Assembly (NCBI RefSeq): GCF_001194135.2
Contig: NC_068991.1
Location: 7,271,615-7,335,614, forward strand
Origin: Octopus bimaculoides
Lineage: Eukaryota
Direction of reading: 5' to 3'
Length of the DNA: 64,000 nucleotides
Shown here: piece after piece, positions 22,592 through 61,400 of the stretch
Layout of the letters: each line of letters opens with the position of its first letter
Numbering within the stretch: position 1 is the stretch's first letter
Position numbers and translations under genes: made by a program
Notes under the pieces: model-generated
The model's input: the letters and a program-made list of their open reading frames with translations, nothing else
Databases searched by the model: none
Told to the model about the DNA's origin: nothing

Positions 22592-24454
22592 ATGAAGATT
22601 GGATTTATTTTATTGTGTCTCATCTACTCAGCCAGGTACGTAAGATATCTTTGAGCTTTCTTTTACCAACTAACATTACTATAAATTAGACAACAATAAA
22701 TAAATAAATAAAAGAAGATTGCTCTCAGGTTTGGACCTCTCAATCTGCAGAGGCCTTAAAATAATTAAAAGACATATATATGTTGGCAATATTTGTGTGA
22801 GTTCAAATTCTGCCAAGGTTGACTTTACCTTTCATCTTTTTAAGTTCGATAAAATAAGTACCAGTTGAGCACTGGGTTAATGTAATCAACTTAACCCCTC
22901 CCCTCAAACTGATGGCCTTTTGCTCTAAAAAAAAGTACTCACTTCTCTTATTCTATTTTGACCCATTTCTTGGTGCCAATAATTCCTTCCAGTTAATAAC
23001 ACCAACTTATTTTTACACAATTTCCAATTTGAATTTTTTGGTGTTTCCGTATTCAGATGATTTGTTTGTTAATGTTTACAGTTGTCCTCCAATCATTGGA
23101 GAAATTCTTTATTAAAAAGAAAGAAAAAAAAAGATATTTTAATTCTTTCTTCCTTGATATCATAAAAGCAAGTAATTTCAATAAAGACAGCACTTCAAAA
23201 TACACCTGATGACACGTGTGAATAACAATGATGCAATTACACCTGTCATTGTAATCAGAGTCCTCAAACTTCTATTATCATAATCAAATTAGGTTTAAAC
23301 ATTACATATTTTCACAAATCATTTACCTACAATTTACAAAGGTAAATAATAAAATATGAAAAATAATTTTCAAAATTTATACAAGATATAAGTAAATAAA
23401 TAAAACGCTTGATTATATATTACACCAAGAGTTCCTGGAGTTTCTCTCTAAAAATTTTGCAGTAACCCAAAACACTTGTAATCACAAATTATTAGGTTGA
23501 GGAAAAAGTTTGTACACCATGTTAAAATAATGCTTTTTTAAATATTTTTGTGGTGTGTGTGTTCATTCAGTTCATGTCATGCTCAATGGTGACTCACTGT
23601 GTTTGTCAAAAATGTGCAGATAATGCCAGAAAGGCAATTGCATAATTTCTGCTGCTGATAGTCTTTGCCCCTGAAATCTTAATGATGATATCTCCTTGTT
23701 GGCCAGAAACTCTGGCCTCAAGCTTTTAGAATGTTCCACAGAATTCATATATAGTTTTTCTTCAAGAATCTCCCCCTCTGTACTAACTTGTTCAGTCTTC
23801 CTCAACTCCATAACACTTGAGTGTAGTTTGAAATGCTTCATGTGAAAGTATCTTATCATCGGTCTCCTATACAACAGGGCTTCCACACAGTTTTCACTCA
23901 CCAAATCCACTCACAAGACATTGATCTCAGCTCAGGGAGAGTAGTAGGAGACACTTGCCCAAGGTGCCATGCAGTGGAATTGAACCAAAAATCATATGGT
24001 TGCAAAGTAAGCTTCTCTAACCACACAACCATTCTTGCATCTGTTCCTCTATAAAAACTGGAAATGAGTGATGGATTGCATTAATATAATAAATAACTTA
24101 TAGGAATGAATTGATACATGAATAATGAATACATTTTTTTTTCTCCTTTTAATTTCAGATGTGAAAGTGGAAGCAAACAGGACATTTCTCTCTGGTATAA
24201 AGATATGATAAAACAGGGAGCTTTTGAAGGGGATTTGACTTCAGCTCAACTAGAAGTGAAAAATTCTATAGAAAAAATAATTAAAAGTTCAATGAAAAGT
24301 AAAAGATTGTTTGATAGAGAAAAACTTTTAGCTTATGAAAATATTTTGAATTTGAATGACAATAGGGATTTTGAGGATGACGATGAAACAGAATTAAATG
24401 ATGATGATGATGGTGATGATATGGATAACAATAGCGAGGAGGTTAGTGTGCATG

Positions 24455-24490
<36 letters not shown>

Positions 24491-27400
24491 TGGAGAAGGA
24501 AAATTTTAAAAGTCAACATGTCAAAGGTGATATCTTACTGAAATCTTCAACAACAATAGAATCTAAAAATAATGTCTCTGAAAATACGACAAATTTAAAA
24601 AGTATGAAAAAATTATTAGATGAAAAGCAAACAGACGATAAGGCCAAACAGATTCCCAAAAGAGAAGAAACAACAGTTGAAATATTGCAATCCAACCAAA
24701 CGAAAACAGTGTTTGAAACAAAATCAGTTGTGAAAAAGATTAGCAACAGGATTCCAAAAATTTCTATTCGACATTTATACAAAACTTGCTATAGTAATTT
24801 TTCCAGCCATTTAGATATATTTTATGCATATGAGAAGCAACGTAACAAACTTTTCCAGAGAGAAGAATATTTAGATAATAAATCTATGCAATCAAATTGG
24901 TTTTTTAAAATCTTATATCAGATACAGCAAAGCCAAATGATTTCACCTTCACCAAATATTCTAAAAATGTCAAAAGTATTCAAAAAATCAAAGGCATCTA
25001 AAAGCAAATATAAAGTAAGAAACATTTTGAAACTTTGCTTAAGAACCTCAGATTGTTTGAAAGTATGTCGATATTTCTTTGAATTTCAAATGTGCATACC
25101 TGGATTTAATTGGATAAGGAATAGTTCTAGTAAGAACCGTTCTTATTTAGTTCAATGGGAAGCTTTTCCGAGAAAGGAAAATTTTGGAATTAATTTTAAT
25201 AAAAAGTCATTCAACAATGACCAGAAGAAACTTCAAAGAGATAATGTCAAAATAAAGGAAAAGACCAAAGATGAAAAGATCAGAGATGGAAAGAAAATGT
25301 TGGATAAAACTGGCAAGAATAAGGGAAAATTTACTGAAAATAAGATCAAAGAAAATTCCCATACTTCAGATAATAAGAAACAAAATAATAGAATGTCCAC
25401 CAAAACAAAACTGTCTTCTGATGATTCACAAAATAAAATTGAAAATAAAATAAAGGAAACGAATGTGAATGAAGAGGTAAATAGTAAAGGAAGAAATGTT
25501 CCAGTTCAGGAAAATATTATGGAAACTCCTCAAGATAAATCATTTAATCAAAGATTAAAAACAGAAAACAGTGTGGATATTGGTATGGTTAACAAGATAG
25601 TTGATGAGATGTCAAATGAATATTTGATCAAGATACAGTCACTAGAGCTAGCAGTAACAAAATTAGAGAAAGAACTGCTAACAGGACAGCTGAGCAGAAC
25701 TAATGACCTGTTGTCATTATCTCAACTTGAAAGCCAGATTCTCCATTTACAGACAAAATTAATGAAACTCAATCAGACATATATCAAGCTTGAACAAGAG
25801 AACCAAGATTTGAAACATGGTCAACAGAAAATTTTTGAACTCAAACAACAGAATGAGAGACAATTGACTAGTAACTTTGATGTGAAGAATAAGATCCATA
25901 ACCAGACTAATTTAATCAGACAACAACAAAAAAATTTTGCTGATTTGTCTTATATGGTACAAAATCAATCAAATCTTCTTAGTAAATTAACTCATCGACA
26001 AGAACAGATAGAAGAAGAAAATAGAATACTTCATCAAGTTGTTATGAACCAGTCTTTATATATTTCACATGTCTTGAAGACAGTTCATGTATTAACCAAT
26101 CAGATGCAAGAAGAACGTATTCGTGAAAATACTAACAAATTTAACATGTTTCCAGTTCAATTAATTGAAAAGTTAGAATCATTGATATCTAGCAGGAAAA
26201 TAGTTGAAGGTGAGAAAATAGAAAAACATATCAAAAGGAAAGGGAAATCAAAAAATATAACTTGTAAAAAACCTTGGATTTCTGTGGGAAAATATTCTCA
26301 TCACAAACTAGTGGTAAAACAAAATAGGTTAAAGTATAGGTATTTCACTCTTTTATCGAAATCCTGCCTCATATTTGATAACATAGATGAACAATCTTTG
26401 CCAAATTTACCAGCATCTTCAACTCAGTATAAATTAAGATCATCTACAGCTGTAGAAAACAAAAACGAAACTATAAATAAAACCATTGCAAGAAAGAAAC
26501 AGGAAACTCAAAAGAGCTCAACACTTCCACAAAAAAATCAGTCGAGTAAATTTAAAGTGCAGGAACCAAAAATTAAAGAAACTGAAAAAAGCAGTCAGAA
26601 TGTAAAAGAAATAAAAGATGAACAGAGTGTTAAAATTAAAAAAGAAAATGATACAAAAGTAAAAGATGGGAATTCAGAAGAAAAAAATCAACGCCAAAGT
26701 CATAATTCTGATAAAGTCAAGCCAAAAGTAGCTTCCCATAGTAAAAAAGAATCTGTTGAGGTCCTTGCTGGTCAGAAACCAACAAAGAGTTCTGAGACCA
26801 ATGTAAAGAATAATAAAGAAGAAAAAGAGGGAAACAAGAAAATGAACGATAAAAACTTAGAACTGAAGGAACCACTCTATGTTGATGCAAAACAGAGCGG
26901 ACCAAAAGGTAAGATGGTTTCAATTGTTAAGGCCTACTGTATTAATGTCATCATTATCATCATTGGTTGTTTGTGTCTCAGAAACTTAGCAGTTCAGCAA
27001 AAGGGGTCATTGGAATAAGTATCAGACTTAGGCCTCCACCACCACCAAGTAACCCATACGTACTGGGGTTGGTTTGCTCAACTAAAACCCTTCGAGGTAG
27101 TGCTCCATTATGGCTGTTGTCCAATGAGTGAAACAAGTAAAAGATAGAACCCTTGATTCTCTGTAGCAGCTTGCTGGCCACTTTTGTCCCCATCTATAAC
27201 AGTATTTTACCCAGTCCCCTAAGCTGTTTTCACTGATATTCTCCTGCATTCTAGATTTCCTTCTTTTCTAAAATACCAATTCATTTGATGCATCAATGTT
27301 TGTTTATAAAAATATTCCCACAAAGCAGTCTTGTTTATTCTTTATCCTTTATTTGTTTTAGTCATTAGACTGTGGCCATGCTGGGGCATTGCCTTGAAGA

Positions 27401-40401: not shown

Positions 40402-43400
40402 ATGGTGAAAGCTGCATATGATCCTGTGCGTAAACTGCCTCGCTATTTGCGAACAGAAGACCTTCCAGTACACACTTTTACACCCCAAACATATCAAGTA
40501 AGGCATTGATTTGTTTCATATTCAATTGTTTGTTAATATGAAGTCAAATGTTGGGGAGTTTGTGTGTGTGTGTGTTTCTTTTAATAGTTGTCTGAGAAGA
40601 AATGACATAGTATCTCGTTTGTGTATGAAAGTTCCTCACAAAGTATGTGAAAAGATGAATATTAATAGAGTATTGAATATTAATATTATATTAATATAAT
40701 ATGAGTGCCTGAATAACATCCTAAAGTTTCATCAGAGCCTCAAATATTGATAGATTGATAGATAGATAAATAAATAGATATAGATATTGCATGTCTTATA
40801 GTCTCATTTTCCTTTATTTAGCTGGAGTTGCTGGATGCTGCCTTACATCAAAACACAATAGTATGTGTGAATTCACCTCCTGGGAAAACATTTATTGCAG
40901 TCATGCTTATCAAAGAAATGGCTATACAAATAAGACCAATGGTACCTGATATTGCCAAACGCAAGTTTACAGTGTTTCTAGTATCGTCAGGTGAGTTTAA
41001 ACTATGTTATACAGCTATATCTCTTGATAACTGATTCTAGCAATGGAGACTCCTTCTCTCACTCTTTCTCTTTATTGGCTATATTCCCTGTCTTAACAGA
41101 CAGGGAATATCGCCAAAGATACAATAGACGGAATATTTGCTGCTGAGTCTTCCTCACCAGTCAATGAACCAAAATGTCATAGTAGTTTTGCACCATTGTC
41201 ATTGAGACCACTCAATCTTGGAGGTGCCAGTACTGTTATTAAGCTACTGGGAAACATACACTCACCCATATGTATATTTATATATCTATGTATTTGCCTA
41301 TTTGTATGTCTATTAAGTTTACTCTATGAAAAATACAGATATATTTATATTTGATTGTTGACGAAATTGAACCAAATTCGATGACTGGCACCCATGCCAG
41401 TGGAGCGCCAACAGCACCATCCGAGTGGGATCACTGCCAGAGCAGCTGTCTGGCTTCCGTGCCGGTGGCACATAAAAAGCACCATTTGAGCGTGATCATT
41501 ACCAGCGTAGCCTTACTGGCACGTGAACAAAACATTCGAGCGAGGTCATTGCCAGTGCCGCTGCACTGACTCCTGAGCAGGTGGCACATAAAAAACACCA
41601 TTTGAGCGTGGCTATCGCCAGTACTGCCAGACTGGCCCTCGTGATGATGACGATGATGACGACAGCATGTTGTTCTAAGCAAATCCTAATCTGATGTTCT
41701 GAAAACCATTTTGATGTCTTTTATTTCTTTCAGTCAATGTAGAGTCACAGGCCAAAGTAGTCTGTCATCATACAGACCTGTCAGTCGGTTATTACACTGA
41801 TGATACAGAAATTACAGTCGATCAGGCTGATAAATGGATTCCAGAACTGCTGACACATCAAGTGTTTGTTACAACAGCTTCAGTTTTTCTCAACATTCTA
41901 CAGTGTGAATTCTTATCACTTAATCAAATAAACCTCCTTCTTATTGATGAGTGTTCGGATATCTGTGTTAGTGAGTCACATAAAGAGGTGAGTGAAGTTA
42001 CTTTCATTTCATAGTTTGTAAAGCATGAAGACATGTATTTAAAATCATTTGTTAAAATGTCTTCGTTTAAAAATGTTCAAAAGTATTGCAAGTGCAAAGA
42101 AGTACCGAAGACATCCTTGTTTTTATCTTATTTTTCATTTTATTGTTTATTTGTTTCAGTCATTGAACTGTGACCACCCTGGGGTTTAGTTGAACAAATT
42201 GACGTTAGTCTCATTTTTTTTTAAAAGCCTGATACTTATTCTATCAGTCTCTTTTACTGAACCACTAAGTTACAGGAGCATATTCAAACAATACTGGTTG
42301 TCAAGCAGTGATGGGGGAACAAATACAAACACACACACACACATGATGGGCCTCTGCACAGTTTCTGCCTGCCAAATTTGGTTGACCTGGGGATATAGAA
42401 GAAAACACTTGCCCAAGGTGCCGCTCAGTGGAACTGAACTTAAAACCAACCGCATGGTTGCAAAGTAACTTTCTTAACCACACAGCCATATCTGCACTCT
42501 ATTTATTTATTTATGTAGTTTTTTTATTTTTATAAACAAATAACCCTGAAATTTCCTTAAATTCTATTACAAGTGGTAATTGAAATCTTAATAATTCTTC
42601 ATTGTTTGCCATTGATTTTACGTGTCTTTTACATCAAACCAGAAGTGAAAGCAGATTGAGAATTATATTGTGGTTGTTCCGTTCAATCAAATGATATTGT
42701 TACCTGATAAAAGAAAATACAGGTGGATCAGTTAATTATGATTGTATTCAACATATTCCCCTCTCAGATTCACACATTTATTGCAACAGTCCCTCAGTTT
42801 TTCTAAGCTCTGTAAAAGAACTCAGAAGGTTGTGCCTCCAACCAGGCCTTTCATGATACCCTCAAAGCTAGGAACTTTTCAGCATTCCCTCATATATCTT
42901 TGTTTTAAAAATTATTTGTACTCGATTGATTTATTCATTTATCAATTTATATTTTTTAGGTAATGAAAATCTATGAAAAATGTGAAAAAAATTTACAGCC
43001 TCGAATTGTTGTGTTGACTGCAGTTTTGCTGTCTAGTAAATGTCGAGACCCTAATGAACTAGAAAATACCATCAACAAATTAGAGTCCATATTTCACTCA
43101 GTTGCTGAGACATCAACTTTAGTTTTCTCTGAACGCCATGGCACCAGCCCCAAAGAAAATGTGCTGGAATGTAATAGTGACTTTGATGAAATCCAGCAAA
43201 TGCCAGAAGTTTCTATGATCCTGCAAGAATCTCTATTTTTTATCGATGAATGTATCCTTTCTGAGAAGGAGAAAGAAAATATTAAAGATCCTCTGCAAGT
43301 TCCTCGCACAGCTCTTGCTCAGTGTCTTAACATACTTGATGTCCTAGGACCGTGGTGTGCCAATCACATAGCAGAAATGTTTATTAAACAGTTAGAAAAA

Positions 43401-46400
43401 ATTATTGGACATGAACAGTCAGAAATTGGTAAGCTGCTATTACGTTACACAACAACTCAACTCAGGATTGTGACCAAAACATTTGAGAAGTTATTCAACA
43501 TTGATTATTGTATTGACGAGTTTTTACCGTTTCTTACTCCGAAAGTTATTAAATTGGTGAATATTCTGCGTGGTTATAAACCAGAATTTGAGTTTGTAAT
43601 TTTGAGAGATGAAAATGCTGATGGAATGGAACATTCCGATGATGACACAATGGATGATCTATCTGACTCCGACAGTGATGACTACGTTAATTCATCTCAC
43701 CACAAGAATGACTTACATATCACTTTGAAACACCCTGCTGCAGCTCGAGCAGAGTATTCCGACTCCGATCCTTTGGAACAGGAAGAAGAAAAGAGATTAT
43801 GTGGACTTATTTTTGTTGATTGCAAATACGTTGCATATGCTTTAAATAAGGTAATTGAAGAGATCTGTGCATGGGATGAAAATATGTGCTTTGTTAAGAA
43901 CGGACACATCACTGGTTATAAGTATGGAGCTAAGAGAGAATCCACGACTTTCCGGAAGCATGAAGAGGTTTTACGTAAATTCCGTATGCAAGAGATCAAC
44001 GTACTGGTAGCAACTTCTAACTTTGAAGAATGTATTGACATACCAAAGTGTAATTTGGTTGTTTGCTTTGATCCACCTAAAGACTACAAGTCATATAGTC
44101 AGTCAAAGGTAACATTTCACTTCTCATTAAATGCTAATTGTTATATTGTGGACTCTGCTGTTGTAGATGACATACGAGGGTTCTGCTATGCTTTGCTGGA
44201 CAAGCTGAACAGATGATACGTTTATAGTGATTGAATGTTTGTGCTGTACATTAGCTCAATTCTACCACAAAATCAACATAGCCTGAACAGGTGCTCAGTG
44301 TGTAACATGTGTCAGGTATTGAGGTGTTTGTAGGGCAATGTGCGATGAAGTGTTTTGCTCAAGAACACAATGCACTGTATGGTCTGGGAATTGAAACTAT
44401 GATCTTGTGATCATGAGTACAACACCCTAACCAGTTGTATTTATTGTTGTAAATAAATACTTTCTTTATTCTTCTTCGCTGCTCAGCATTAACCCTTCAA
44501 CATTTAAACTAACCATATCTGGCCGAAATATTCTGCCTGTTTTATGTTCAAACCAGAGAGATCCAGCCTATCACACCTACCCTAAAATGTCATTCTTAAA
44601 ATATTAAATCTAAATTATTTAGATTTTAAAATTTCCAGTAAATGTTTATAATACAGTTAATTTTGATAAATTAAATTAAATTGAATTTTTCCCTGTAGAT
44701 TTGGATTTTTATCCCTAATATTATTATTATTATTATTATTATAATTATATATATATATATATATATATCATCATCATCATCGTTTAACGTCTGCTTTCCA
44801 TGCTAGCATGGGTTGGACGATTTGACTGAGGACTTATACTTATACATGCACTTATACAAATTATATTCTACAGGCTCGTGCACGTGCTCGGAATGCAAGT
44901 TTCCTCATGCTAATTGATAGTGAAAAAGCACGACCATTTTTAACAGAACTCAATACATACAAAAGAATAGAACAGGTAAATAATTTAATTTAATTGTTTA
45001 TTTTTTTTTATATCTTGATGGAAATCTGTATTTGTTTGGTGGAAATCTATATTTGTTCAGTAGTATGATAAAAAATTGCAAGATAATTCTTTCTAAGCAC
45101 AGGTCTAAAATTTTGTTGAGATGAGGAATAGGTTGCTTGATTACATTGACCACAATGCTCAACTGTTAACTTTTTAATACATTGCTATATGAACATACAT
45201 TTTCTAGGAAACTGGTTTTCTTAGAAAGAATATACTTTATTCTAAAACATGTTGTCTGGTGTGGAGATGAAATAGAGTATTCAGTATTCACCCGTTAAAG
45301 TATATATTTTCTTATTTCAGGTTTTATTGCGAAAATACATAAATAAAGCTGAGCCTTCCAAGGAAGAACTAATACAAACCCTTGAACAATACAACATCCC
45401 ACAGTCGGTAGTTTTAAATACCAATAACAACACAAACAACAACAACAACAATTCTACTTCTCCCATTACACTGTTTTCAGCCATCTCTATTGTTAACAGG
45501 TCAGTTAAACAAACTCTCTCCAAATTCTCTATCAAGAAATTATTATTTTCTACTCTAGGCACAAGGACAGAAATTTTGGGGGAGAGGGGCTGGTCAATTA
45601 GAGATCAGTGTAAACAACTAGCCCCCTTCCACAAGATTTCAGGCCTTTTGCCTGTAGTGGAAAGGATTCTTGTAACTAACAGAGACACTGCCCTTCATGC
45701 TGTCTTCTGCTAGTATATGTTTTGTTTGTTTTTTGAAACTGCTGCAATCATTGTCATCATCATCGTCATCATTGTCGTTTAACGTCCACTTTCTGTGCTA
45801 GCATGGGTTTGATGCTTTGACTGACAAATGTTAAGCTGGGAGGCTGCACCAACCCACCAACCTGATTTGGCAAGATATCTACAGCTGGATGCCCTTCCTA
45901 GCACCAACCATTCCTAGAGTGTGGTAGGTGCTTTTTTACGTTCCACTGGCACGGGTGCCAGTCAAACGGCACTGGCATCAGCCACACTGAAATGGTGCTT
46001 TTTATGTGCCACCGACATGGGTGCCAGTCAAGCAGCACTGGCATCGACCACGCTCAAATAGTGTTGTTTTACGTGCCACTGGCACAGGTACCAGTCAGGC
46101 AGCAGTGGCTTATAGAATGAAATAAACCTTGGGGGCTTTGATTTCTCTATAACCCAGACAAGCCAATGCCAGTATATTGTTATATGAATGTATATTTTCC
46201 AGGAGACTGTTTCCTGTATGAGCAATGTCTAATTACCTAAGAATATTTAGTGGAGGAGGATTGAGATTGTCCAGTTTTAATCTTCCCCTCAAAGCAATAT
46301 AAAGATTTCACTTCAGCAAGGCATGATGGTGTTTAATATGAAGGACAGCCTGTTCTTGAAAGCCATCTAAATTATCATTCACCTGAGGCTGCTCCCCTTG

Positions 46401-49400
46401 GGGAAGGGAACTGGCTGGTGTCACATAAAAAGCACTCAAGCTGTTACCATGTAAAAGTGCTTGTGCAGTGCCACTGTAAAAGCACCCAGGCATGCACTTG
46501 AAAGTGGTTGGTGTTAGGAAGGGCATCCAGCCTTAGAAACCATGCCAAATCAGACTGGAACTTGATGCAGCTCCCCAGCTTGCCAATTCTAGTCAGACCA
46601 ACCCATGCCAACATGGAAACGGGCATCAAATGAGGATGATGATGATGATGATAATTTTGGACAGATGATATTCCGGCATCTAGTCACCACCATCTCTAGC
46701 TTCTTTCCAGTTATTCCCACCCACTCTTATACAATGTGGGGTGACCATGTATGTCTTCTATAACAAGACACCTGGGTTACCCCCTCCATCCACCACTACC
46801 ACTTAGTTGAGAGGTCTTATTCCTTTTCATGTTCTTTCTTTTCTGACAATCTCACTGGTGTTAGTAGCAAAAAATAAAAAGAACAATGAAAAAAACATCC
46901 AGTACATATTGGCATTAAAAAGGGCATCCAGCCATAGAATCCATCCCAAAGCTGACACTGGAGCTTCATGCAGCCCCACAGCCCTCTGGATCCTGTCAAA
47001 CCATTCAACCTATGATAGCGTGAAAAATTGATGTTAAATAAAGATGATGATGGTGACGATGATGATATACTATTATTGTAATTGAAAGTTTAGTATTTTC
47101 TGTGATAAATAAACAATAAACAAAGAAATTGTTCACCTTACAAATTATTTTCTGTATATTTTTTTCTTCAGATACTGTGCTAAGTTACCTAGTGATGCCT
47201 TTACTCACCTCACACCCAAATGCACTGTTGAAAAGGTCAATGTTGATAATGAAACCCATTATGTTGCTACTCTTAAACTACCAATCAATTCTCCAGTGAA
47301 GAAAGATGTTCAAGTATGTTACAAAACTGCTTAACTTTTCTCTGCTTCATAACTTTCCAAATTCATTTCAGTGTTTATTCATTCTCTACACAACGGGGTG
47401 CTGGAAAATTCTTGGCTTTGGGTTGAAAAAGTATACAGGAGGATCAGTTAATTATGAGAAATACAGTTGGTTTGAATTTGCTGCAGAAAGTCGTCTGTGT
47501 TTGTGGTAGTAGTTGGGGTGGCGGGGGTGGGGGTAGAATGCAGCTTGGGTGCCAAGTGAGTGGCCGCCCAAAATAGTTTGGGAACCACTGATCTAACCTA
47601 TGGAACAAATAGATATGAAAAAAAAAACAACTGGCTTCTCAAGATATTACATAGTGAAATTGGTTTTGATTATTAAATGACAGATAAAATGGGTAGAAAA
47701 GGCTAAAGAAAATTTAATATAAATTTGAGGAATATTGCTAAAATCAGAGCTGATTTGATATCAAATATATTATTTGATAAAATGTGATTAATTCGACCTT
47801 TATTAACTTATGAACTATTAAAAATGATTGTTGTAAAAATTCCATGAAATGTTGAACTGAAATTATATTTATTTTTACTTTAGGGAGATGTAATGCCAAG
47901 AGAAAAGTTAGCCAAAATGTCTGCTGCGCTCAAAATGTGCCAAGAACTCCAAATTCAAGGTAAGCAGAAAACTATTATTTGGAAAAATAATTTTTATACA
48001 GGCTTGGCTCTGTGGTTAAGAAGCTTGCTTCTCAACCATATGTCTCTGGTTCAGTCCCACTGCACAGTACTTTGGACAAATGTTCGGGGCTGACTAATAC
48101 CCTGTGAATGGATTTGGTTGACTGAAACTGGCAAAAGCCTGTCATATGTGTATGTGCATATATGTGTGTTTGTGTGTAGTCTTCTCTTGATGTCATGATT
48201 GTAAATGAGCATCACTGTCATACAAGTGAGTTTGTTCATTTCCAGTCATCCATGAAAAGCCTGTCTGGCCATGGTCAGATATTATTCTTTTCTACTCTAG
48301 GCACAAGGCCTGAAATTTTTGGGGTGAGGGGCCAGTCAATTAGAGGTCAGTGTAAACAACTAGCCCCTATATGCTCATTTTAACCAGCTGAGTGGACTAG
48401 ATCAATGTCAAATAAAGTGTCTTGTTCAAGGACACAACATGTCACTGGGAATTGAACTCACGACCTTATGATTATAAGCCAAATACCCTAACCACTAAAC
48501 CACTTACCTTCTCAGTAGCTAAATCCACTTTACATTAATATGTTTCTGATAAATTGACTATTTTTCTTTACAGGAGAACTAGATGATCACTTCCTTCCAG
48601 TGGGGAAAGAGATTTTGAAGCATGAAGAGAAAGAAGCCTTAAAGGATCCTCTGAAATATGGGGAAGAGGATGAGGTAGAGTGGGAAGAAGAGGAAGAGGA
48701 GGAACTCATTGGCTGTCCAAGACCAGGCACCACAAAACGAAAACAGTATTACTTTAAAAAGGTACTTCTGTGTTTTTACTAGTTTAGAGTAGTGCTTCTT
48801 TTGGGAGATGAATGAATTCCATATCACAAAAAAAAAAAGCAACATAATTTATAAAGAGATTTATAGACTAAACCATTTGACTTTTTAGATTCATTTATCA
48901 AACTTTGAAATCCTACCAAAAGTTTATTTTAGGAGTGGCTGTGTGGTAAGTAGCTTGCTTACAAACCNNNNNNNNNNNNNNNNNNNNNNNNNNNNNNNNN
49001 NNNNNNNNNNNNNNNNNNNNNNNNNNNNNNNNNNNNNNNNNNNNNNNNNNNNNNNNNNNNNNNNNNNNNNNNNNNNNNNNNNNNNNNNNNNNNNNNNNNN
49101 NNNNNNNNNNNNNNNNNNNNNNNNNNNNNNNNNNNNNNNNNNNNNNNNNNNNNNNNNNNNNNNNNNNNNNNNNNNNNNNNNNNNNNNNNNNNNNNNNNNN
49201 NNNNNNNNNNNNNNACCCGTAACTTAGCGGTTCGGCAAAAGAGATGATAGAATAAGTACTAGGCTTACAAAGAATAAGTCCTGGGGTCGATTTGCTCAAC
49301 TAAAGGTGGTGCTCCAGCATGGCCACAGTCAAATGACTGAAACAAGTAAAAGAGTAAAAAGTACAATTGTGTACAAGCATAGGCATGGCTGTGTGGTTGA

Positions 49401-52400
49401 AAAGCTTGCTTCCGAACCATGTGGTCTTAGGTTCAGTCCTATTGCACAGCACATCTGGTTGGGAAGCAAACTTCTTACCACACAGCCACACCTGCACCTG
49501 AACAAAGAAACATACATTAAGCTTTATCCCTTTATCTTTTAATCCGGCCATATTCTGCCCAAATATTCTACCTGTTTTATGTTCAAACTGGCCTGATCCT
49601 GCCTCTCACACCTACCTTATAAAAAGATACAATCATGTCATCAAAATTTCAAAGTTACAAGATAATAAATGATTCATTGGAAACAATGGGAATAAATAAA
49701 ATAAGAATTACATTCGAAAGAGTAATCTGAACGCTAAAGGATTAACCCTTTAACATTTAATCCAGTCGAAATATTCTACTTGTTTTATATGTTAAAACTG
49801 ATCAGATCCAGCTTCTCACACCTCCCCTACAATGTCATTCTAAAAATATGCAAACATACCATTGAAATCACTAAGCTACTTGATAATGTATGATTAATTC
49901 AAAGCAATCTGAATAAACAAGCAACAGATTTGACAAAGAAACCTGAATGCTGACAGGTTAAACACCTGTCTGCTTCATTCACTCACAAAAACAAGAATGA
50001 ATTGTCCTAATAGTATATAAAATAATATATACAGCCCCCTATGTCCTAGGTGTTTATCAATATAGATCTTTTGAGAAATGAAATTATTTCTCCAGCCCTA
50101 CTTATAATTGTTTATTTGTTGAATCATGCCTGTCTTGTTCAGACTTTTTTTCTTGTTGGATTCTCGTTTCCTATCTGACATATGTAATGTCTCTTTTCCT
50201 ATCTGACGTATTTAACATAAAGTTAACTCAATGGAGGATTTTTTTGTTTTTTGTTCTTTATAGGCTGCAGATGCTCTGATTAACAACCATGTTGATACTA
50301 ACCAGCTTTGTTGCTTATATAATATTCATATGGTACTGACTGGACCTATCACAGAAGAGCAAAATACACGTGGAAGGAAGATCTATGTTCCAGAAAACAC
50401 ACCAAGAGGGTTTGGAATCTTGTCCTTGAAAAACATTCCTCAGGTAAATAATAATAATAATAATAACAATGCTTTCTACTATAAGCACAAGGCCTGAAAT
50501 TTTGGTGGGGAGGAGCTAGTTGATTACATTGACTCTAGTACTTAACATCATCATCATCATCATTTAACATCTGCTTTCCATACCAGCATGGGTTGGACAG
50601 TTTGACCAGCCAGGAGGCTGCACCAGGCTCCAGTCTGATCTGGCAGAGTTTCTACAGCCAGATACCCGTCCTAACACCAACCACTCTGAGAGTGAAGTGG
50701 GTGCTTTTACATGCCACTGGCATGGAAGCTAGTCAGGCAGCACTGGCATTGGTCATGCTCGAATGGTGCTTTTTCTGTGCCACCAGTATGGGTGCCAGTC
50801 ATGTGGAACTGGCATCAGCCACACTCAAATGGTGCTTTTTATGTGTATTTTTCTTATGTTGCACACACTGAAAAATAAGAAACCATATAATTTTACTTAC
50901 TTAAATTACTTATATGTAAGTTTTATTCATTTTTGAGACATAAAATGTTCGATAACCTCATCATACAATGAACCACTTTATTATTAGTTTTGAAAACAAA
51001 TTAGGATCAAAGTTATAGGATGATATTGTAAGAAGAAAAAAATTATTGTAAAAAGAAATTAGTTTTAGTTTAGGAATTTTAAATTAATTTAAACATACAA
51101 CTTCTCACCATGGAAACGAACATGTGACCATGCAGTCAAAGCTGTTGCACACGCTTCACCATTCTCCTACAATACGCCCAGTACCATATTATGATACAAT
51201 GTGCTGTGATATTTCAGGACATCCGCCACCAAATTTCGGGCAGGGGTAGAACAAAAGTTTTCCATTATGATTTGTGTAAATTAATGAATAAGGTGTTCCG
51301 AGTTCAAATTCTGCCATGGTCGACTTTACCTTTCATCCTTTCGGTGTTGATAAAAAAAGTACCAGTAGAGCACGTAGGTTACCCCACCCCTAAATTGCTG
51401 GGTTATGCCAACATTTGAAATCAATCATAAATCTGTATGAATAATTTTGGGACAATTTCTCTCAACAGGTTCCATGTTTTCCAGTATATACTCGTTCTGG
51501 AGAGGTAACTGTATCTCTTGATATGGTTGAGTCAAACGTATCAATAAATGAAAGTCAGCTGAATAAGCTGACAATTTTTCATCGATTTGTGTTCAGCACA
51601 GTACTTCGACTGGAGAAGGATCCTATTGACTTTATGCCTGACGAAGCAAAAGTCGGTTATCTTATAGTACCTTTGATAGAAGGTTTGTATTTTTCTTTTG
51701 TAACTATCTTATTTCGTTTGAACTGGAAAATAAGAAGCAGTTGTATTTATGTGAGGTTTCACTTTTATTCTAAGGAGACTTACATGCATTACATTTCACA
51801 CTATGTCTCCTTTCTGTATGTGTATGAGTGTATATGTATATATGTATGTGTTCTAATTGTAAGTAGTGAGGTTATAAAATCTCTGATTGGATTTAGAATA
51901 AATTTAGAGCTGACTTTTAACAAGGTTTTAAATGAGAAATTAAATTACCATCTAAAATGTTTTATTTCAAAAGATATTAATTATTAAAATTTATCCAAAT
52001 TGCTGTTGAATAGTAATTGATTTCAGATTAAATGGTTGTGTTTGGATCATGTCTCAGTACTGTCTGTGCCAAGATCTTGCACATTTAGAATTTGAAACAA
52101 GATTAGCAAATGAAAATGCAAAACTATATAAACTTAAGACCAGTTCAAGTATACTTGCCACCAGTTCAAATATGTTTGAGTGATATTTGAACTTGTGAGG
52201 GCTTGTCACTGCAGTTTGTCTCCAGACAGACTGCAGTGACAAGCCTATACAAGTTCAAATGTCTTTCAGAGCTTGTATGCTTTCCTTCACTGCTTCAGAC
52301 ATCTACTTATGTAGTAATAAAAATGGTTAAATATAAATATACTGGAAATTTTCTTTGTGCAAGTGGGCTGAGCATTTATTCACCTAAAATTAGTGGATAT

Positions 52401-55400
52401 TATAAAATTTTATATTCAGCTTCTTTGATTTAAGAGAAGCAATGCTTAAATATTATATACATCATTGTTTCTTTAAAAAATTTATTAAAACAAAATCAGT
52501 TGAATGAAAATATTTTTTTTCTACATGCTTATGTACTTTTATGTTGTATATAGATGACAGTGGACATCATATTAACTGGAATTTTGTGAATGAAGTCCAG
52601 TTTTCCTTCAGCAGAAATCATCCTGATATATATGATTCAAAAAGAGAGAAATTTAAGTTTTGCACTGAAGACTTCGAAGATGCAGTTGTGATGCCTTCGT
52701 ATCGCAACATGGATCAACCACAGCATTTCTATGTTGCTGAGATCAAATACGACCTGAATCCAAACAGCCCGTTTCCTTCTCCTGAGCTTTATAGGACATT
52801 TAATGAGTATTACTCTAAAAAATACGGTCTTCATATCACTAACTTGGAACAACCTTTATTGGATGTTGACCATACTTCTGCACGTCTGAATTTATTAACT
52901 CCACGTTACATGAATCAAAAAGGCATCGCTTTGCCAACCAGCAGTGCAGAAACCAAGAAAGCCCGTCGAGAAAACTTACAACAAAAACAAATCTTGATTC
53001 CAGAATTGTGTGTGGTTCATATCTTCCCTGCTTCTCTGTGGCGTAAAGCTGTGTGTCTTCCTGCTATTCTTTACAGAATAAACTATCTTTTGATTGCTGA
53101 AGAGATTCGTGTCAAAGTTGCCCAAGGAACCAAAATTGGTGTCATTGAAATTCCAAAAGGCTTTCACTTTCCTAAACTTGATTTTGGTTTTGAAACCAAT
53201 CCAGAAAAGATTATTGATAATAAAACTGAAAGTGAGATGAAGGTTACAAAAGCCAAGGAAAATGGAACCTGCACATCTTTGTCAAAGACTGCTGCAAGTT
53301 ATAGTAACAAGCTTGTATTTAAAGATGCTAAAGAAAACAATGAATTAATAAAAAATGATTCAGAAAATCAGAAAGATATCAAAGAAATGCCAGTAAGAGA
53401 AATGGTAAATAATGTTGAGTGCAAGAAATTAAACTATAAAAAGCCTTTTATAAAGAGCAATTCAACAGAATCTCTACATAAAAGCTGCAATAAAGATGAC
53501 TGCAACAGGCCTTTGAAGGATTCTAATAGAATTCAAGAGGCTCTTAATGCTGCAGCGGGAAAGAACAACTATGAGCGGAGAGAAGATTCCGTTAGTACCT
53601 CATCTAGCAGAAGTTATAACCATTCAGATTTTAACAATTTTAAATCCTGCTCTGTAAACAACAGCGAAGAAAGGAAATTTCAACCTCAACAATTTACAAA
53701 TAAGAAAAAGCATGAAAAAGATGCACAATGGTCAAATGATAACATTAAAGAGGAGAAACTCAAAGAGGAAAAGAATAATAAGTCTTTCTCAAAATCTCCT
53801 TTTACTAACCTGCAAAATTCTGGTAGAATACCTAACGGCAGTAAAATAGATTTTAAGATAACTTTCGATATTGCAAAGGATTTGAATCCCAAAGACAGTC
53901 TTGATTCCTTTAAAGAAACCAGCGAAGTTCCGTCTAATGTTAAATTTCAGAATGACACTCTAAAGAAAGATCTAGAATCTCTTGATATTCGTTTGATTTG
54001 TGATAACAGAAGCTATCCTGAAGGAAATGCTTTCCATCAAATGGATAAGCAAATTCGAAAAGAAAAGAAGGCTTCTAAGACATTTGGCCAAATAGATGAC
54101 TTTTATCAAACAAAGTCAACAAAGTCTGAAATGCTGAGTTCTACAAAAATTGTAGAAATTACAGATTCCGAAGACCATCATAAAGACAATAGTGACAAGC
54201 TTTCTAATGGCAACTGTGATAAAAGTGAATTGAAAAACATATCTCCTACTTTTAGTCCACAGAAAGCTCCTGTGTGTAAAACCTCTGTGCAGAATTCTAA
54301 TAACCAAGCAGGTTATCCTCCAATTGTAGAAACTTGTAAAGAATTGAAAAATAATTTTAATAATGCTCGTCTTCATTCTTCAAACATAACCATCGCCCAT
54401 AGCAACATGGATTCCGTAAAAGATGTGGAAGAAAAACTTTGCAGTAACTCAAAAGGAAATGAGGAAAATTTAAAAACTTGTACATCCACCACTTTCTCTT
54501 CAAATAAAGACCAACAATGTAATTCATATACAGCTAGCAATTCAAAAGATAGTGTTGCACTACACTCTAATTCCACTGCCACAGCATTTAATCCTCCCCA
54601 GGAGAAAACTTTATCAACAACATCTTCAGACTCTGTTTCTTCATCTAGTCATCAATTACCAACACCCACTTCCCATTCATTATCAGCGCTACCAGAGCAG
54701 CAAATGTGTAATCATTCTAATTCATCAAATCAGTCTGTATTTAATTGTACTCAGTCTACTTCTTCACCAACAGATGATGACAAAACATCCTCAGATTCAG
54801 AGATCACTCCATGTCAGACTGGACAAACTGTTTCCCACACTCAGGACTCTACTGACCAACCAGAGGTAGCTGTACAAGATATCTCTGCTCCAGCACCTTT
54901 ACATGATAGAGACCAAAGAGATGTTGAAGCTGTTTCACCACCCATAGTCATACATAATAATAACAACAACAACAATATCAATGTCATTCAAAGCAATTGC
55001 CCCATTGATGCAAAAGTACCCCTCTCTAACACAAACAAATGCATCACTCCTTTGTCCTCTCATGATAACGCCATCTGTGATAATACAAGACACAATTCCG
55101 ACACCGATGTCTTTCAAAATATAACAACATTCAGTGGCCAGTCAGCAGCAGTAGATATGTCTAAAATATCTGACTATGGCCAATGTGATGACACAACCAA
55201 TGCAAACCTTGTTTACAGCTATGCTGAGGCTCAGGAGAAACTTGCTCAGTCTTCAAACACTCCACCTCTCTTGTTAGATACTGATATTGAACTGAGTTGT
55301 TACATTGGTCCAAGTCCATGCATTATTTTGCAGGCGCTTACCATGTCAAATGCAAATGATTTTTTCAGCCTTGAGAGATTAGAAACCATTGGCGATTCCT

Positions 55401-58400
55401 TTCTTAAATATGCTATCACTGTTTACCTTTACTGTCAATACCCAGGTATCCACGAAGGAAAGTTAAGCTATCTACGGAGTAAACAAGTAAGCAATTATAA
55501 TTTATATCGTCTTGGTCGTAAAAAGGGTCTTCCTGAGAGAATGGTTTCAGCTAAATTTGAACCTTATGAGAATTGGCTCCCACCTGGTTATGTTATTAAT
55601 GAAGATCGTAGGCGCGGCCCCGTACACAAAGTTCACATTTCTTCAAGCAGCAACAAGCAGGACCCTTGTTCATCTGCAAATCAATGTGGAAGTGAATCGG
55701 TTGAAGAAGAAATTCTATCGACATCTTTTAACAATGAAAAATTATCATCAAATCTAAACAATGGCATGATGAACTTCATTGAAAATGACAAAATTCCAAG
55801 TCATGTACGAAAAGCAAATTTAGAACAATGGAAATTCAACCAAGAACTGGAAGAATTAAAACAATCACAAGAACAAGATGGTGTCAGTGGTTGTGGTAGT
55901 TCTACAAATGAAAAGCCACTTGTTCCATATAGCTTGCAAACAATTCATAGCATTCCAGACAAAAGTGTAGCAGACTGTGTTGAAGCTCTTATTGGTTGCT
56001 ATCTGACTTGCTGTGGGAAAAGAGCTGCTCTTCTTTTCATGTCATGGCTTGGTCTAAAAGTGCTTCCTCAAAAGCACATTTTGCAGGAGCAATATGATGA
56101 TGTATGTATAAACATCTTTCACTTTTAATGATTCAAAATTTGGTATTAACAGAATTTGACTTCAAATTTAAAATTTAAAACAATTTAAAATTGTTTCACT
56201 ATTTCAAATAAATGTAATTTCAAGCCATGTTTTTAGTCTGAGGACAACTTTCTCCTCTCAACAAAAAAATGCCTGTTATAGATTATATTGCTATTATTTT
56301 CTGTTTAGGTTATTTTTTATCCATGTTTTTTGTAAAATTTTGATGTTTCATAATAATATTATTAATTATTCAGCTATACTTTTTTTGAGAGTCCTCTGCA
56401 TGATTACCGAAGACTAGAAAGTCCTAAACTCAATAATGTCTTTATTTCATTTAAATTTTATTTCAAATTTGATGGCAATACTTCATTCAAAGTATGTAAT
56501 GCTTACAGATACATTTCTATTCACATTTATATCATTATTTTGATGATTGTTTAATTATGTTCTTCAATATTTTTTTTTAATAAACATATTTAAACATTTT
56601 CTTACTTAAACCGTGCCTTGTCTTGAGTTAATTGGTTAATTTTTGTTCATTTAGAATATCACTGAACACCAACTGGATGAGCTGGAAACTCCTCTGTCAC
56701 CACTCCTTACTCATACAATTAATGCTGAAGAAGTTCTTGAACGTTTACTTGATGGCTATGAAACTTTTGAGAAAGAGATTGGCTACAAATTCTCTGATCG
56801 ATCTTATCTACTACAAGCTTTCACACATGCATCGTATCATTACAATACAGTGACTGACTGCTACCAGCGGTATGTTTTGCTATTTTATAAACCAAATTTT
56901 ACTTGAAATAATTTTAGGAATTACAATTGTTGGTATTTCCTTTAGATTAATGTATTTAATGATATAAAAACACTTTGATATATATACATGCCACAATTTC
57001 AGCAGTGCATCTTCACATAAAAAAATTGTCTGTGTATTAAGGCATGTAATATAAGCACAACTTTGCAAGGTGGTTTTTTTTGGAAAAAAAAATATGTGCA
57101 TCTGCCATCAAATACAGTAATCTTCAGCCAGGCTGTTTACCTTTGTTTTTGAAATTCTTTAATTGACTTGGAACACAATTCGAAACCATGTGATCAGAGT
57201 AGCATCTGCATGATACTTGTAGAACTGACATGTTAGTGGCAGCAGATTGCATATTTGACAGGAAGGTCCAAGTAAAACATTAAATATTAGCAAAACAAAG
57301 ATATTAATCACTGATTAGAATTTCTGTCCTCCCTCCAGCATTATAAAAACTGACCAGATTTGCTACACAGAGACTATGAAGGAATTCTTTTAAGCAGGGC
57401 AGACAAAGACATGATAAATGCTCAGACCCGACAACACTTCAGCACCTATTTTACTTTGTCTCAGTTAAACTCATTCATCTACCGCTAGCTTTTTCATTGC
57501 CTGATAAACTGCAGAGTGTGGGATGCTTTCAGCTGCTTTTTTTAATTTTTATATAACATATAATCGTCTGCTCTTAGCTGAAAACTTTTTCTTACAGTTG
57601 ATTGCTGTGGTTGTAGTATTGAGGGAGGTGGCTTATGGAAGGTGTTGAGAAACAAGTGTATGATAGCACGATAGGAACAAGTGTCTTGCTGTATTAGAGA
57701 TACATGTCTACCTTAGCTGGGAAGGAGAGAAGATAATGATGAAGTGTCAGGACATGGTCTTTTACCTCACTCCATAAGTATTTCGAGTTGATATTTCACT
57801 CACTGCATTAAATATATTAACAAAAATTCAATTATTGTATTTTTTTTTACCCCCCTGTGTATGGCATGTCTTTGTAATCTTCCTCAGTGACTAGTCTATT
57901 ATTATTATTATGTTTTTAACTACTCTTACTTGTATTTGAGTCGTTGACTTTGAAGTTGCAAGAAAATGTATTTATCAATTATCATGCGTTAAAATTTCCA
58001 GTACTGTAACTATTGCTAATGGATTTTTATCTCTGAAAAACTAACACAGCTACTAATATTAGTTCTTATTATTGATTTTATGTTTTATTTTTATTGATAT
58101 ATGTTTTATTTCTTGGGGAAAATCAAAGTTCACAGATAAAACTTACTCTTTACTGATAAGATTTTTCATCTTTTGTCTTGTTCAGTCATTTGACTGCTGC
58201 CATGTTGGGGCACCCCCTCGAAAAATATTTAGTCAAATTAATTGACCCCCAGTACTTATTTTTTCATTCTAAAGCCTGGTACTTTTCTATCAGTCCCTTT
58301 TTCTGAACTGTTTGGCATGTAAACACACCAGCACCAGTTGTCAAGTGGTAGTGGAGGACAAACACAGGCACATACACACACCTGTATATATACGATGGGC

Positions 58401-61400
58401 TTCTTTCAGTTTCCATCTACCAAATCCACTTGCAAGAATTCGGTCGGCCCAAGGCTATGGTAGAAGATACTTGCTCAAGGTACCATGCTGTGGGACTGAA
58501 CCCAGAACCATGTGACTGAGAAGCAAACTTCTTACCATACAGCCATGTCATGTTGAAATTTTTTTAGAAGTGTATTATTCGTAATTTTAGGGAGGGGATG
58601 AAGGCTACTTCTGTGTTCATAGTAGTAGTCATGATGTCTGCATTTTGATACCCGGCACAAATCATGGCACATGTAACTCTTTTCCAATATTCAGCTGGCT
58701 TCCTGTCTTCCATGTCAGCTAACGTTTTCTTGGCTACAACTTAATCTTTATGCCCGCCAATGCCATTGACTATTCACCAATACATCAAGCTGTTCTGAGA
58801 AAATCATCAATTAGCCTAAACCACCTGTAAATTGCATTGGACAGTTGATAATTATTAATCAGAGCCAATAACTTGTGAAGGCACATGGCTTAGTGGTTTG
58901 GACGTTGTACTTATGCTTGCAAGACCACGTGTTTGATTCCCAGACTAGGTGGTACATTGAGTTCTTGAGCAAAACACTTCGTTTCATGTGGTTCCAGTCC
59001 ACTCAGCTTTAAACGAGTAACTCTGTGATGGATTGGTATTCCTTTCAGTGGAGACGTTGTGATCTTGGTCACTTATACCTCATGGAAACCAGGTAATGGG
59101 CCCTATGAATACTAGGGATTGAGATGGTAGTGTCCAGAGGTTGAAGATGATAATGATAATGAATGACTTGTGATTTTTAATTTATAAAACAATACAAAAT
59201 ATGAATTTATTTATTTGATTTTTTTTTTTTTACTAGTCTGGAATTTTTAGGTGATGCAATTTTGGATTACGTGATCACTCGCCATCTTTACGAAGATTCT
59301 CAGCGTTATTCTCCTGGGGTTCTCACTGACCTGCGATCAGCTCTAGTCAATAACAACATTTTTGCTGCATTAGCTGTCAAATGGAACTTCCATAAGTTTT
59401 TCAAAGCCATATCTCCGGAACTGTTTAATGTGATTGAAAGGTTTGTTGCTCGCCAAAAGGAAAAGGAAGATGAAATTGATTTTGATGAAGAAGTAAGTGT
59501 TCTTAATGATATTCCTGTTTTAATTCTCTGATCTCTGTACCTAACTGTGGAGTTTGTAAATCCTATCAAAATTTTATGGGTTTCTACTTATTATTTTTTT
59601 AATGATGTCTAAACCAAAGATCAGACTTTTATTATAACTTGTAGATTTTCACTTGACCACTGTGAAGAATTAACACTTTACAATGACCTCTGCTTTTGGC
59701 ATTATTACCATCTCGTTCCATGTCCTGAAATCTACAATTCTCTTCACTCCTCTCCCCAAATTTTTCTTCTTTGATTCTGAAGCAAAATCCTGGTGAGGTC
59801 AACTTTACCTTTCATTCCTCCCGGGTCAATAAAACAAAGTACCAATCAAGTATATGGGGTCATTGGTACCAACTGACCCTCCACTCAAAACTGTAGTGTT
59901 TAAATCAGAAACAATTGTTGTTGTTGTTCTTATCATCATCATCATCATCATCAAGTTGGTACATGCAAGGATGGCAAGCCAAGTATTATTCTCAAATAAT
60001 TGTCGGTTCCTTTTTTTGTTCTTTATCATTTCCTTGTGTTCCTACAATCACTGGTATCAGAACTACCTTGAGGTGCCATATTTTTCAATTTCAATGAGCA
60101 AATCTTTACATTTCCTCCTCCTCCTCCTCCTTATTTTTTTAATATATTTTTTTTTTCACTAATTTATTAGTTCCAAGATGAAGGAGAAGAAAGTCCCGAT
60201 GAAGAAGTTGTTGAAATGGAAATTCCCAAAGCACTTGGTGATATATTTGAGTCTGTTGCTGGTGCTATCTATCTTGACAGCAACAGGTCTTTAGATGTGG
60301 TCTGGAAAGTTTACTATCGTATAATGAAGCCACAAATTGGTAAGAAAACTTTATTAAATATTTTGAATTGGGATAGAAAATTAAATGTTATGTATGTATG
60401 ATTCTTTGCATGTGTGTGTATGTTTGTGTCTCCTTGTCTTGACATTGCATAATAGCTATAAATGAATGTCATTCACTTCTAATTTCTGTAAAATTATGTC
60501 TGGCCATGGGGAAATATTTCCTTACTTGTAATCAGGTGAGGGTTGGCAACAGGAAGGGAATTTGGCTATAGAAAATCTTCCCCAATAAATTTTGTCTGAC
60601 CCATGCAAACATGGAAAAGTGGACATTAAAACGATGACAGTTTCCATCTACCGAATTTCACTAACAAAGCTGATTATAAATTAGGATAGAAAGCATCTGC
60701 TCAGGTGTCTCACAGTAAAGACGACAATAATTGCGAATTTCTTAACGTCTTGACCATGTTTGTATCTTTGCCTGTGGTTTGCTTGTTTAAAATATTATGA
60801 AGTTGTAATGAGTGCTTAAGAATAACTGTCAGTGATGTGTGGTAGGAAAAATAAGTCAGATACAATATTCCAGATTCAATCCAATTGAGACTTGTTGATT
60901 TAAGAACTACAACTGTAAAAGAGAACTTAGAATAATGATAACAACATTAGAGACAGGGGCCATTTTAAAAGCATTGTAAACCCCTGGACAACGCACTGTA
61001 CTGGAGATTGGTTTTGATGGGATTTGACTTTTAGGAAAAATATTCTTCCATTTTTCTATCAAAAAATATTTGGAAAATTTTTCTTCATTTCTTCCAGAGA
61101 AATATTTGAAAAGTATTCCAAAGTCACCTGTACGAGAATTATTGGAACTGGAACCAGAAACTGCTAAATTTGAGTGAGTATTACTATGGATAATATTGGA
61201 TTTCTGAATCACAAAACTTCACTTGGTCAGGACATTTTGTTATTTAAAATATGGTAGAGTTAACATATTTAATGCAAGGAGCATCGAAAACCTAAGATTT
61301 CAATTTCATTACTAATATATTACTGTATAAAGGCAGCGAGCTGGCAGAAACGTTAACACGCCGGGCGAAATGCTTAGCGGTATTTTGTCTGTCTTTAGGT

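Follow-up and report, generated by a model that had tools for sequence, protein, structure and literature searches.

Molluscs are known to carry a single Dicer and no DICER2 (PMC11114477, PMC4793324). Formaggioni et al. (2024) recovered DICER1 in Mollusca but neither DICER2 nor an Argonaute of the small interfering RNA (siRNA) type, placed the mollusc enzymes in the DICER1 clade, reported that the DECH box of the helicase is mutated in cephalopods and described the helicase as "likely inactive" in the phylum (PMC11114477); Rosani et al. (2016) counted one DICER in Octopus bimaculoides. Aderounmu et al. (2023) likewise described the ATPase motifs of mollusc Dicers as degenerate and tied this to RIG-I-like receptors, an interferon-like defence and the expansion of cephalopod microRNAs (miRNAs) (PMC10159624), and a 2026 preprint found the HEL1 lobe undetected in the Dicer of Biomphalaria. 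Here we analyse the Dicer gene in a 64,000-nt stretch of the O. bimaculoides genome (NC_068991.1, positions 7,271,615 to 7,335,614 of the forward strand), hereafter the window, whose own coordinates are used throughout. A first-pass annotation, made from the letters of this stretch, had suspected that helicase decay might already be on record for lophotrochozoans; for molluscs it is (PMC10159624, PMC11114477), and the core finding, degeneracy of the mollusc and cephalopod helicase, is essentially known. The additions made here are a motif-by-motif inventory for octopus, a dating of the changes from molluscs through coleoids to octopods, and the recognition of HEL1 as the relaxed part.

The gene lies entire within the window as 17 coding exons on the + strand (40402-62681) that encode 2402 aa. 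The exon map was obtained by tblastn with a human DICER1 query, which served as a map only, and splice sites were set by eye on the genomic sequence. The query found one match per Dicer segment, collinear on the + strand from 40822 to 62636; the spliced frame of 7.2 kb has no internal stop, and every intron shows canonical splice sites. Pfam domains follow one another as DEAD (weak), Dicer_PBD, Helicase_C, Dicer_dimer, Dicer_platform, PAZ, two copies of Ribonuclease_3 and Dicer_dsRBD, which is the order expected of a metazoan Dicer (class 4 RNase III): helicase, DUF283, platform-PAZ, RNase IIIa, RNase IIIb and dsRBD. The helicase exons (40822-40990, 41734-41987, 42960-44108 and 44874-44975) are bounded by polypyrimidine-AG acceptors and GT donors and join in frame to give a 558-aa peptide, which phmmer against all PDB chains aligned to human DICER1 (5zak) over residues 1-557 (E=4e-108).

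Within this full-length helicase, which the 5' part of the gene encodes, five of the superfamily 2 (SF2) motifs are altered. Motif I (Walker A), at the start of HEL1 in coding exon 2 (40822-40990; placed by translation, splice sites and phmmer), is AATTCACCTCCTGGGAAAACA at 40870-40890 and reads NSPPGKT against NTGSGKT in human DICER1. Coding exon 3 (41734-41987) carries HEL1 motifs Ia to II, of which motif II, GATGAGTGTTCG at 41946-41957, reads DECS against DECH. Coding exon 4 (42960-44108) carries motif III, where ACTGCAGTT at 43017-43025 gives TAV against TAS, and continues through the HEL2i partner-binding domain (Dicer_PBD, 1.3e-28) and an acidic linker to HEL2 (Helicase_C, 1.9e-12) with motif IV and motif V, the ten residues of which at 44010-44039 include EECID against EEGVD. 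Motif VI is split by an intron: QSK (44100-44108) closes exon 4 ahead of a GT donor, and ARAR (44874-44885) follows an AG acceptor at the start of coding exon 5 (44874-44975), which opens with ARARARNA and closes HEL2, giving QSKARAR against QSKGRAR. Translation reproduced all the strings that the first-pass annotation had listed at these positions, and the human motifs it had quoted stand opposite them in the phmmer alignment columns (ntgsgkt, dech, tas, eegvd, qskgrar). It had further pointed out that none of the six divergent codons (CCT, CCT, TCG, GTT, TGT and GCT) contains an adenosine; these codons were confirmed, and adenosine-to-inosine recoding is therefore unable to restore the canonical residues.

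A competent SF2 DExH or RIG-I-like ATPase has both glycines in a motif I of the form xTGxGKT and a DExH motif II; the window protein has SPPGKT, with the first glycine replaced by proline, and DECS. Likewise, TAV, EEC and QSKARAR stand where such an ATPase has TAS or SAT in motif III, glycine in motif V and QxxGRxxR in motif VI. The Pfam DEAD model for HEL1 scores 21.7 bits, below its cut-off of 26 bits. The Walker A lysine and threonine, the Walker B aspartate and glutamate, and the glutamine and both arginines of motif VI are all kept.

To collect relatives, 1.84 billion representatives were searched exhaustively with HMMER and the matches named afterwards. The matches include Haliotis asinina, Sinanodonta woodiana, Ylistrum balloti, Lymnaea stagnalis, Elysia marginata, Dreissena polymorpha, Acanthosepion pharaonis, a nemertean and a hemichordate. 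Among those with names the DICER1 of the cuttlefish A. pharaonis stands nearest (79% identical), and this kinship, with the exon structure held in common, speaks for a cephalopod source of the window. When the whole helicase was used as protein query the best match was 43% identical and no cephalopod was among the matches; searches with HEL1 or HEL2 alone recovered one decapodiform-like fragment (P0151), whose contig ends 68 bp upstream of the matching exon and shows no further Dicer exons in the 10 kb downstream. At motif I the other molluscs read SNSGKA (Haliotis, XP_067682625.1), SIAGKT (Sinanodonta, KAL3873454.1), ATSSCM (Ylistrum, XP_060069957.1), CSESKL (Lymnaea), CPNSKL (Elysia) and SSSGRM (Dreissena), so that the first Walker A glycine is absent in 7/7 mollusc Dicers sampled, the window included. 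Most mollusc Dicers also have an altered motif II (DDCH, DHCQ, DNCH, HNCH) and an altered motif III. The window differs from these six molluscs in both motifs V and VI, where they keep EEG[VI]D and KGRAR; conversely, GKT is kept in the window but gone altogether from several of them. In the nemertean, the hemichordate and vertebrates motifs I, II, V and VI are canonical, with TAA in place of TAS at motif III of the first two.

We then set the window residues against a census of 125-165 Dicer-family representatives, the number depending on the column. The first Walker A glycine is present in 100/125, with proline in Elysia only; the motif II histidine in 152/162, with serine in none; the motif III serine in 98/165, with valine in 2; the motif V glycine in 161/165, with cysteine in Ciona only; and the motif VI glycine in 135/155, with alanine in 11, including the Dicer of the beetle Henosepilachna. 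Judged by these frequencies, the window substitutions are not chance. Dicer helicases with several degenerate ATPase motifs are also found in the Dcr-1 of Drosophila and of Fopius and in the Dicers of Ciona intestinalis, the millipede Chamberlinius, the bdelloid rotifer Didymodactylos and Trichuris suis, which points to recurrent decay of the ATPase pocket across animals.

The changes can be ordered by means of the cuttlefish gene, which was read by tblastn and directly in a 55-kb locus of Acanthosepion (Sepia) pharaonis (CAHIKZ030000030.1:266812-322180). It shares with the window the exon structure, the junction of QSK to A in motif VI, DECSDIC in exon 3 and the ARARARNA start of exon 5; it differs in having TAT at motif III and a canonical EEGID at motif V, and its HEL1 exon 3 is merely 50% identical. 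Since DECS and ARAR recur in cuttlefish beside TAT and EEGID, DECS and KARAR are coleoid-wide and TAV and EEC come from the octopod branch. The motif alignment proposed as a check in the first-pass annotation thus divides its list: the Walker A glycine loss is mollusc-wide, DECS and KARAR are held in common with cuttlefish, and only TAV and EEC are private to octopods. On these comparisons the decay of the helicase runs through the molluscs as a whole, with additions in coleoids and in octopods, and is no cephalopod novelty. Erosion began with the loss of the first Walker A glycine in stem molluscs and proceeded with the gain of DECS and KARAR in the coleoid stem and of TAV and EEC on the octopod branch.

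The deposited cuttlefish DICER1 protein (P0036, CAE1142787.1) is itself defective: it starts within exon 4, leaves out HEL2 by running on from LCGLIFVD to DUF283, and closes with a long nonsense stretch rich in Phe, Ser and Leu. The cuttlefish genome does hold exon 3 (positions 3437-3691 of the retrieved locus) and a full exon 4 (9884-11026).

Between the window and cuttlefish synonymous sites are saturated (proportion of synonymous differences, pS, above 0.75), as would suit an octopod set against a decapodiform, and the nonsynonymous rate (dN) with amino-acid identity was used in place of dN/dS. Identity is 50% for HEL1 exon 3 (dN 0.40), 81% for HEL2i (0.135), 86% for HEL2 (0.08), 90% for PAZ (0.072), 96% for RNase IIIb (0.035) and 35% for the disordered insert of exon 12 (0.68); exon 4 as a whole is 79% identical. 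HEL1 exon 3 is thus the fastest-evolving folded segment, and these rates clearly suggest that constraint has been relaxed specifically on the ATP-binding lobe HEL1 and not on HEL2 or HEL2i.

An AlphaFold2 model of residues 1-614, made with a 27-sequence alignment, has a mean pLDDT of 75.8, with 80-90 in the HEL1 blocks, and shows HEL1, HEL2i and HEL2 well folded. Foldseek places mammalian Dicer and Drosophila Dicer-1 nearest to it (TMq 0.65-0.70), compared with 0.51-0.54 for the closed, translocating Dcr-2 and AncD1D2 states; as evidence on function this predicted conformational difference would be weak. The folded three-lobed helicase base and the HEL2i partner-binding domain that characterize an ATP-independent, miRNA-type Dicer are both present, as seen in AlphaFold2, Foldseek, Dicer_PBD and the 81% conservation of HEL2i.

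The most probable reading of the five altered motifs and the fast-evolving HEL1, taken together, is a helicase that is independent of ATP. We put at roughly three in four the probability that this is an intact, single-copy, DICER1-clade Dicer whose helicase has lost ATP hydrolysis stimulated by double-stranded RNA (dsRNA), and with it translocation, and serves as a passive platform, the erosion having been staged from stem molluscs onwards. The helicase still has its three-lobed HEL1/HEL2i/HEL2 base, and its nucleotide pocket departs from the canonical residues at conserved positions of motifs I, II, III, V and VI. Under this reading it would no longer hydrolyse ATP on dsRNA or translocate; it would hold pre-miRNA loops and dock a dsRNA-binding protein partner as a passive clamp, like human Dicer and fly Dcr-1, while cleavage would be measured from the PAZ and 5' pocket, free of ATP.

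In the phmmer alignment query position 2 corresponds to Dcr-2 residue 14, and with the Dcr-2 Walker A lysine, which we take to be K34, the first proline of SPPGKT would fall on Dcr-2 G31. The Dcr-2 mutant G31R hydrolyses ATP very inefficiently, and flies with it lose most of their siRNA production (PMC7668257), and the Walker A mutant of Caenorhabditis elegans DCR-1 is G36R, at the equivalent position (PMC12146746).

Several points weigh against the passive reading. The strictly catalytic residues remain (the lysine and threonine of GKT, the aspartate and glutamate of DEC, both arginines of RAR), and DECS and ARAR are unchanged between octopus and cuttlefish despite saturated synonymous divergence; this identity, with the 86% conservation of HEL2, indicates a pocket that is not freely drifting. 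In human Dicer, motif sequence has proved a poor predictor of ATPase activity in either direction (PMC10159624, PMC11658451), and for mollusc Dicers the case for ATPase loss is made from sequence. The 17-exon model was drawn from the genome. The cuttlefish Walker A exon was absent from the retrieved locus even by permissive tblastn, sitting upstream of that DNA, and the comparison of motif I among cephalopods accordingly covers the octopus of the window. Loss of the ATPase is plausible, though we infer it from motifs and rates: as for the label "ATPase-dead" in the first-pass annotation, the five non-canonical motifs stand, and death of the enzyme goes further than a pocket with its catalytic Lys, Thr, Asp, Glu and Arg allows one to say.

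The same observations would suit a helicase that has been re-tuned, one that binds and slowly hydrolyses ATP or another NTP, or works as a nucleotide-binding switch, with the coleoid residues as functional replacements. We regard this as rather unlikely, though it draws on the retained catalytic residues, on the identity of DECSDIC and ARARARNA in octopus and cuttlefish and on the conserved HEL2; moreover, Dcr-2 G31R still hydrolysed ~20% of ATP in 60 min (PMC7668257) and ATP hydrolysis by the human helicase domain was reported in 2024 (PMC11658451). It has to contend with five motifs altered together, with a HEL1 that evolves faster than any other folded segment, and with the complete loss of GKT in other molluscs (ATSSCM, CSESKL), which marks the pocket as dispensable in the phylum. 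Consecutive prolines, of which the window protein has two, also deprive a P-loop of backbone amides by which the phosphates are normally bound. More doubtful still is a conserved, re-purposed coleoid pocket acting as a nucleotide or ligand regulatory switch, with TAV and EEC perhaps one more step, linked to the expansion of octopus miRNAs; what makes it conceivable is that DECS and KARAR were fixed before the octopod-decapodiform split while GKT, DE and RAR were kept.

The motifs might instead be artefacts of the gene model or assembly, with canonical residues in other exons, or might belong to a pseudogene copy with a working Dicer elsewhere. A run of N in intron 9 (48968-49214) and an exon model taken from the genome leave some room for this, but it is largely refuted, and we hold it to be extremely improbable. 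The 7.2-kb frame is unbroken, each Dicer segment occurs once in the window, and a six-frame scan of the window found no GxGKT, DE[CAIV]H, EEG[VIL]D or QxxGRxR with Dicer-like sequence around it; neither tblastn nor six-frame regular expressions revealed alternative or mutually exclusive helicase exons there. The cuttlefish genome has matching exons with the same QSK-to-A junction, DECS and ARAR, and published surveys give one Dicer for O. bimaculoides. A pseudogene in particular is rejected on the strength of the open reading frame and of nuclease domains that are 90-96% conserved.

Insect Dicer-1 (Drosophila Dcr-1, PDB 8dfv, and Fopius Dcr-1) resembles the window protein in combining a full-length helicase whose ATPase motifs are degenerate with an intact nuclease, and Drosophila Dcr-1 is structurally similar to the window helicase (TMq 0.70). 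The beetle Henosepilachna vigintioctopunctata has a protein, deposited as hypothetical (KAK9890121.1), with the same QxxARAR form of motif VI. The insect Walker A (RSSKE) is more degraded than SPPGKT, however, and the strong phmmer match to 8dfv is limited to the HEL2 part (residues 418-542), with a Foldseek identity of ~24%; these differences indicate decay independent of insect Dcr-1, as the first-pass annotation had supposed. Its description of a miRNA-specialised enzyme resembling Dcr-1 fares less well, for this implies a sub-functional paralogue: insects also carry an ATP-dependent Dcr-2, whereas molluscs have one Dicer and lack DICER2 (PMC11114477, PMC4793324). Long dsRNA might still be handled by the product of another gene elsewhere in the genome, either a further Dicer that depends on ATP or a partner helicase related to Dicer, the decay of this gene then being sub-functionalisation as in insects. 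In C. elegans translocation is carried out by the RIG-I-like DRH-1 and not by DCR-1 (PMC12146746), and molluscs have RIG-I-like receptors (cited in PMC10159624); with neither DICER2 nor a siRNA-type Argonaute found in Mollusca (PMC11114477), we consider this arrangement very unlikely.

Human and mouse DICER1 (PDB 5zak, 7zpk) are the best overall match in sequence (~40% identity) and structure, and have the 5' and 3' end pockets in common with the window enzyme. In these enzymes the dicing of pre-miRNA is ATP-independent and the helicase works as a clamp, a likeness that is predicted for the octopus enzyme. Vertebrate helicase motifs are canonical, unlike those of the window, and the vertebrate loss of ATPase has been put down to changes outside the motifs (PMC10159624). 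The Dicer of Ciona intestinalis (UniRef F6XSF3) is independently degenerate; in the census it alone joins the window in having cysteine at the motif V glycine, and it differs elsewhere (DFGKC, DDCH, ESKSRAR). The closest published counterparts are the Dicers of O. bimaculoides (XP_014781475.1) and Euprymna scolopes, analysed in the study that reports the mutated DECH box in cephalopods (PMC11114477). Supplementary figure S5 of that study, machine-read with shifted labels, lists XP_014781475.1 and contains a 13-residue string matching the window; XP_014781475.1 is probably the product of this gene itself or of an orthologue very close to it. That study covers the DECH box only ("ECSN"), to which the present inventory adds motifs I, III, V and VI and the split between coleoid and octopod changes.

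On the nuclease side the gene is conserved throughout. The four acidic residues of each RNase III domain, which we take from the alignment to human DICER1, are kept in IIIa (including ERLETIGD) and in IIIb, as are the PAZ 3' pocket (SYRN, NEYY) and the 5' pocket with its arginines (TRGRK, YTRSGEV); read in translation, these motifs uphold the earlier statement that the RNase III acidic residues and the PAZ Tyr/Arg are intact. The best sequence matches are mollusc "endoribonuclease Dicer-like" proteins and vertebrate Dicer, Dcr-2 being far weaker (1e-28 vs 4e-108), in agreement with the first assignment to the Dicer-1 type; the clade label used here is that of PMC11114477.

An eroded helicase helps to explain why RNA interference by long dsRNA may work poorly in cephalopods. 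It also fits molluscs that have lost the siRNA branch, with neither DICER2 nor a siRNA-type Argonaute, and that rely on miRNAs, Piwi-interacting RNAs and protein-based antiviral sensing, a picture already published (PMC10159624, PMC11114477).

The remaining exons complete the domain series. Coding exon 1 (40402-40497, +) has its ATG at 40402 and ends in FTPQTYQ ahead of the donor GTAAGG, aligning with the FTPRxYQ of other Dicers. Coding exons 6-9 (45321-45499, 47172-47313, 47884-47959 and 48574-48761) encode the linker and the DUF283 Dicer dimerisation domain (Dicer_dimer, 9.4e-26); an Asn-rich tract lies in exon 6, in the linker ahead of DUF283, and is shorter in cuttlefish (NNNNDST). Coding exons 10-11 (50264-50443 and 51469-51682) encode the platform domain with the 5'-phosphate pocket arginines (Dicer_platform, 5.9e-53). 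The window has N runs, marking assembly gaps, at 11454-11463 and 15856-16310 besides the one in intron 9; the protein alignment is continuous over exons 9 and 10 despite that gap, and seemingly no coding exon is lost.

Coding exon 12 (52554-56101, 3548 nt) holds PAZ, the connector, a low-complexity insert of ~700 aa and RNase IIIa, with ERLETIGD from 55373 and the second acidic motif from 55958. The insert (roughly residues 1170-1850) separates the PAZ connector from RNase IIIa, has many Ser, Asn, Thr and Lys residues, and makes the window Dicer ~480 aa longer than human Dicer. RNase IIIb is encoded by coding exons 13-15 (56655-56869, 59237-59492 and 60171-60339; Ribonuclease_3, 2.8e-45), with acidic motifs from 59238 and 60231, and the C-terminal dsRBD with the TAA stop by coding exons 16-17 (61098-61173 and 62486-62681; Dicer_dsRBD, 6.6e-47), all on the + strand.

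Upstream of the Dicer gene lies an open reading frame of 966 aa (24118-27018, +), rich in Lys, Asn, Glu and Ser and with a coiled-coil-like middle, which has no Pfam match at E<=0.01; it is perhaps a gene of one exon, or else a single large exon from some neighbouring gene that is uncharacterised. Within the Dicer introns, arrays of a ~65-nt unit lie in opposite orientation in intron 2 (41382-41643) and intron 6 (45933-46131) and are 71-75% complementary over 62-110 nt. Two other dispersed intronic elements have copies 84-90% identical (45535-45625 and 48277-48367; 44767-44829 and 45762-45824). The inverted copies could form dsRNA in the Dicer pre-mRNA.

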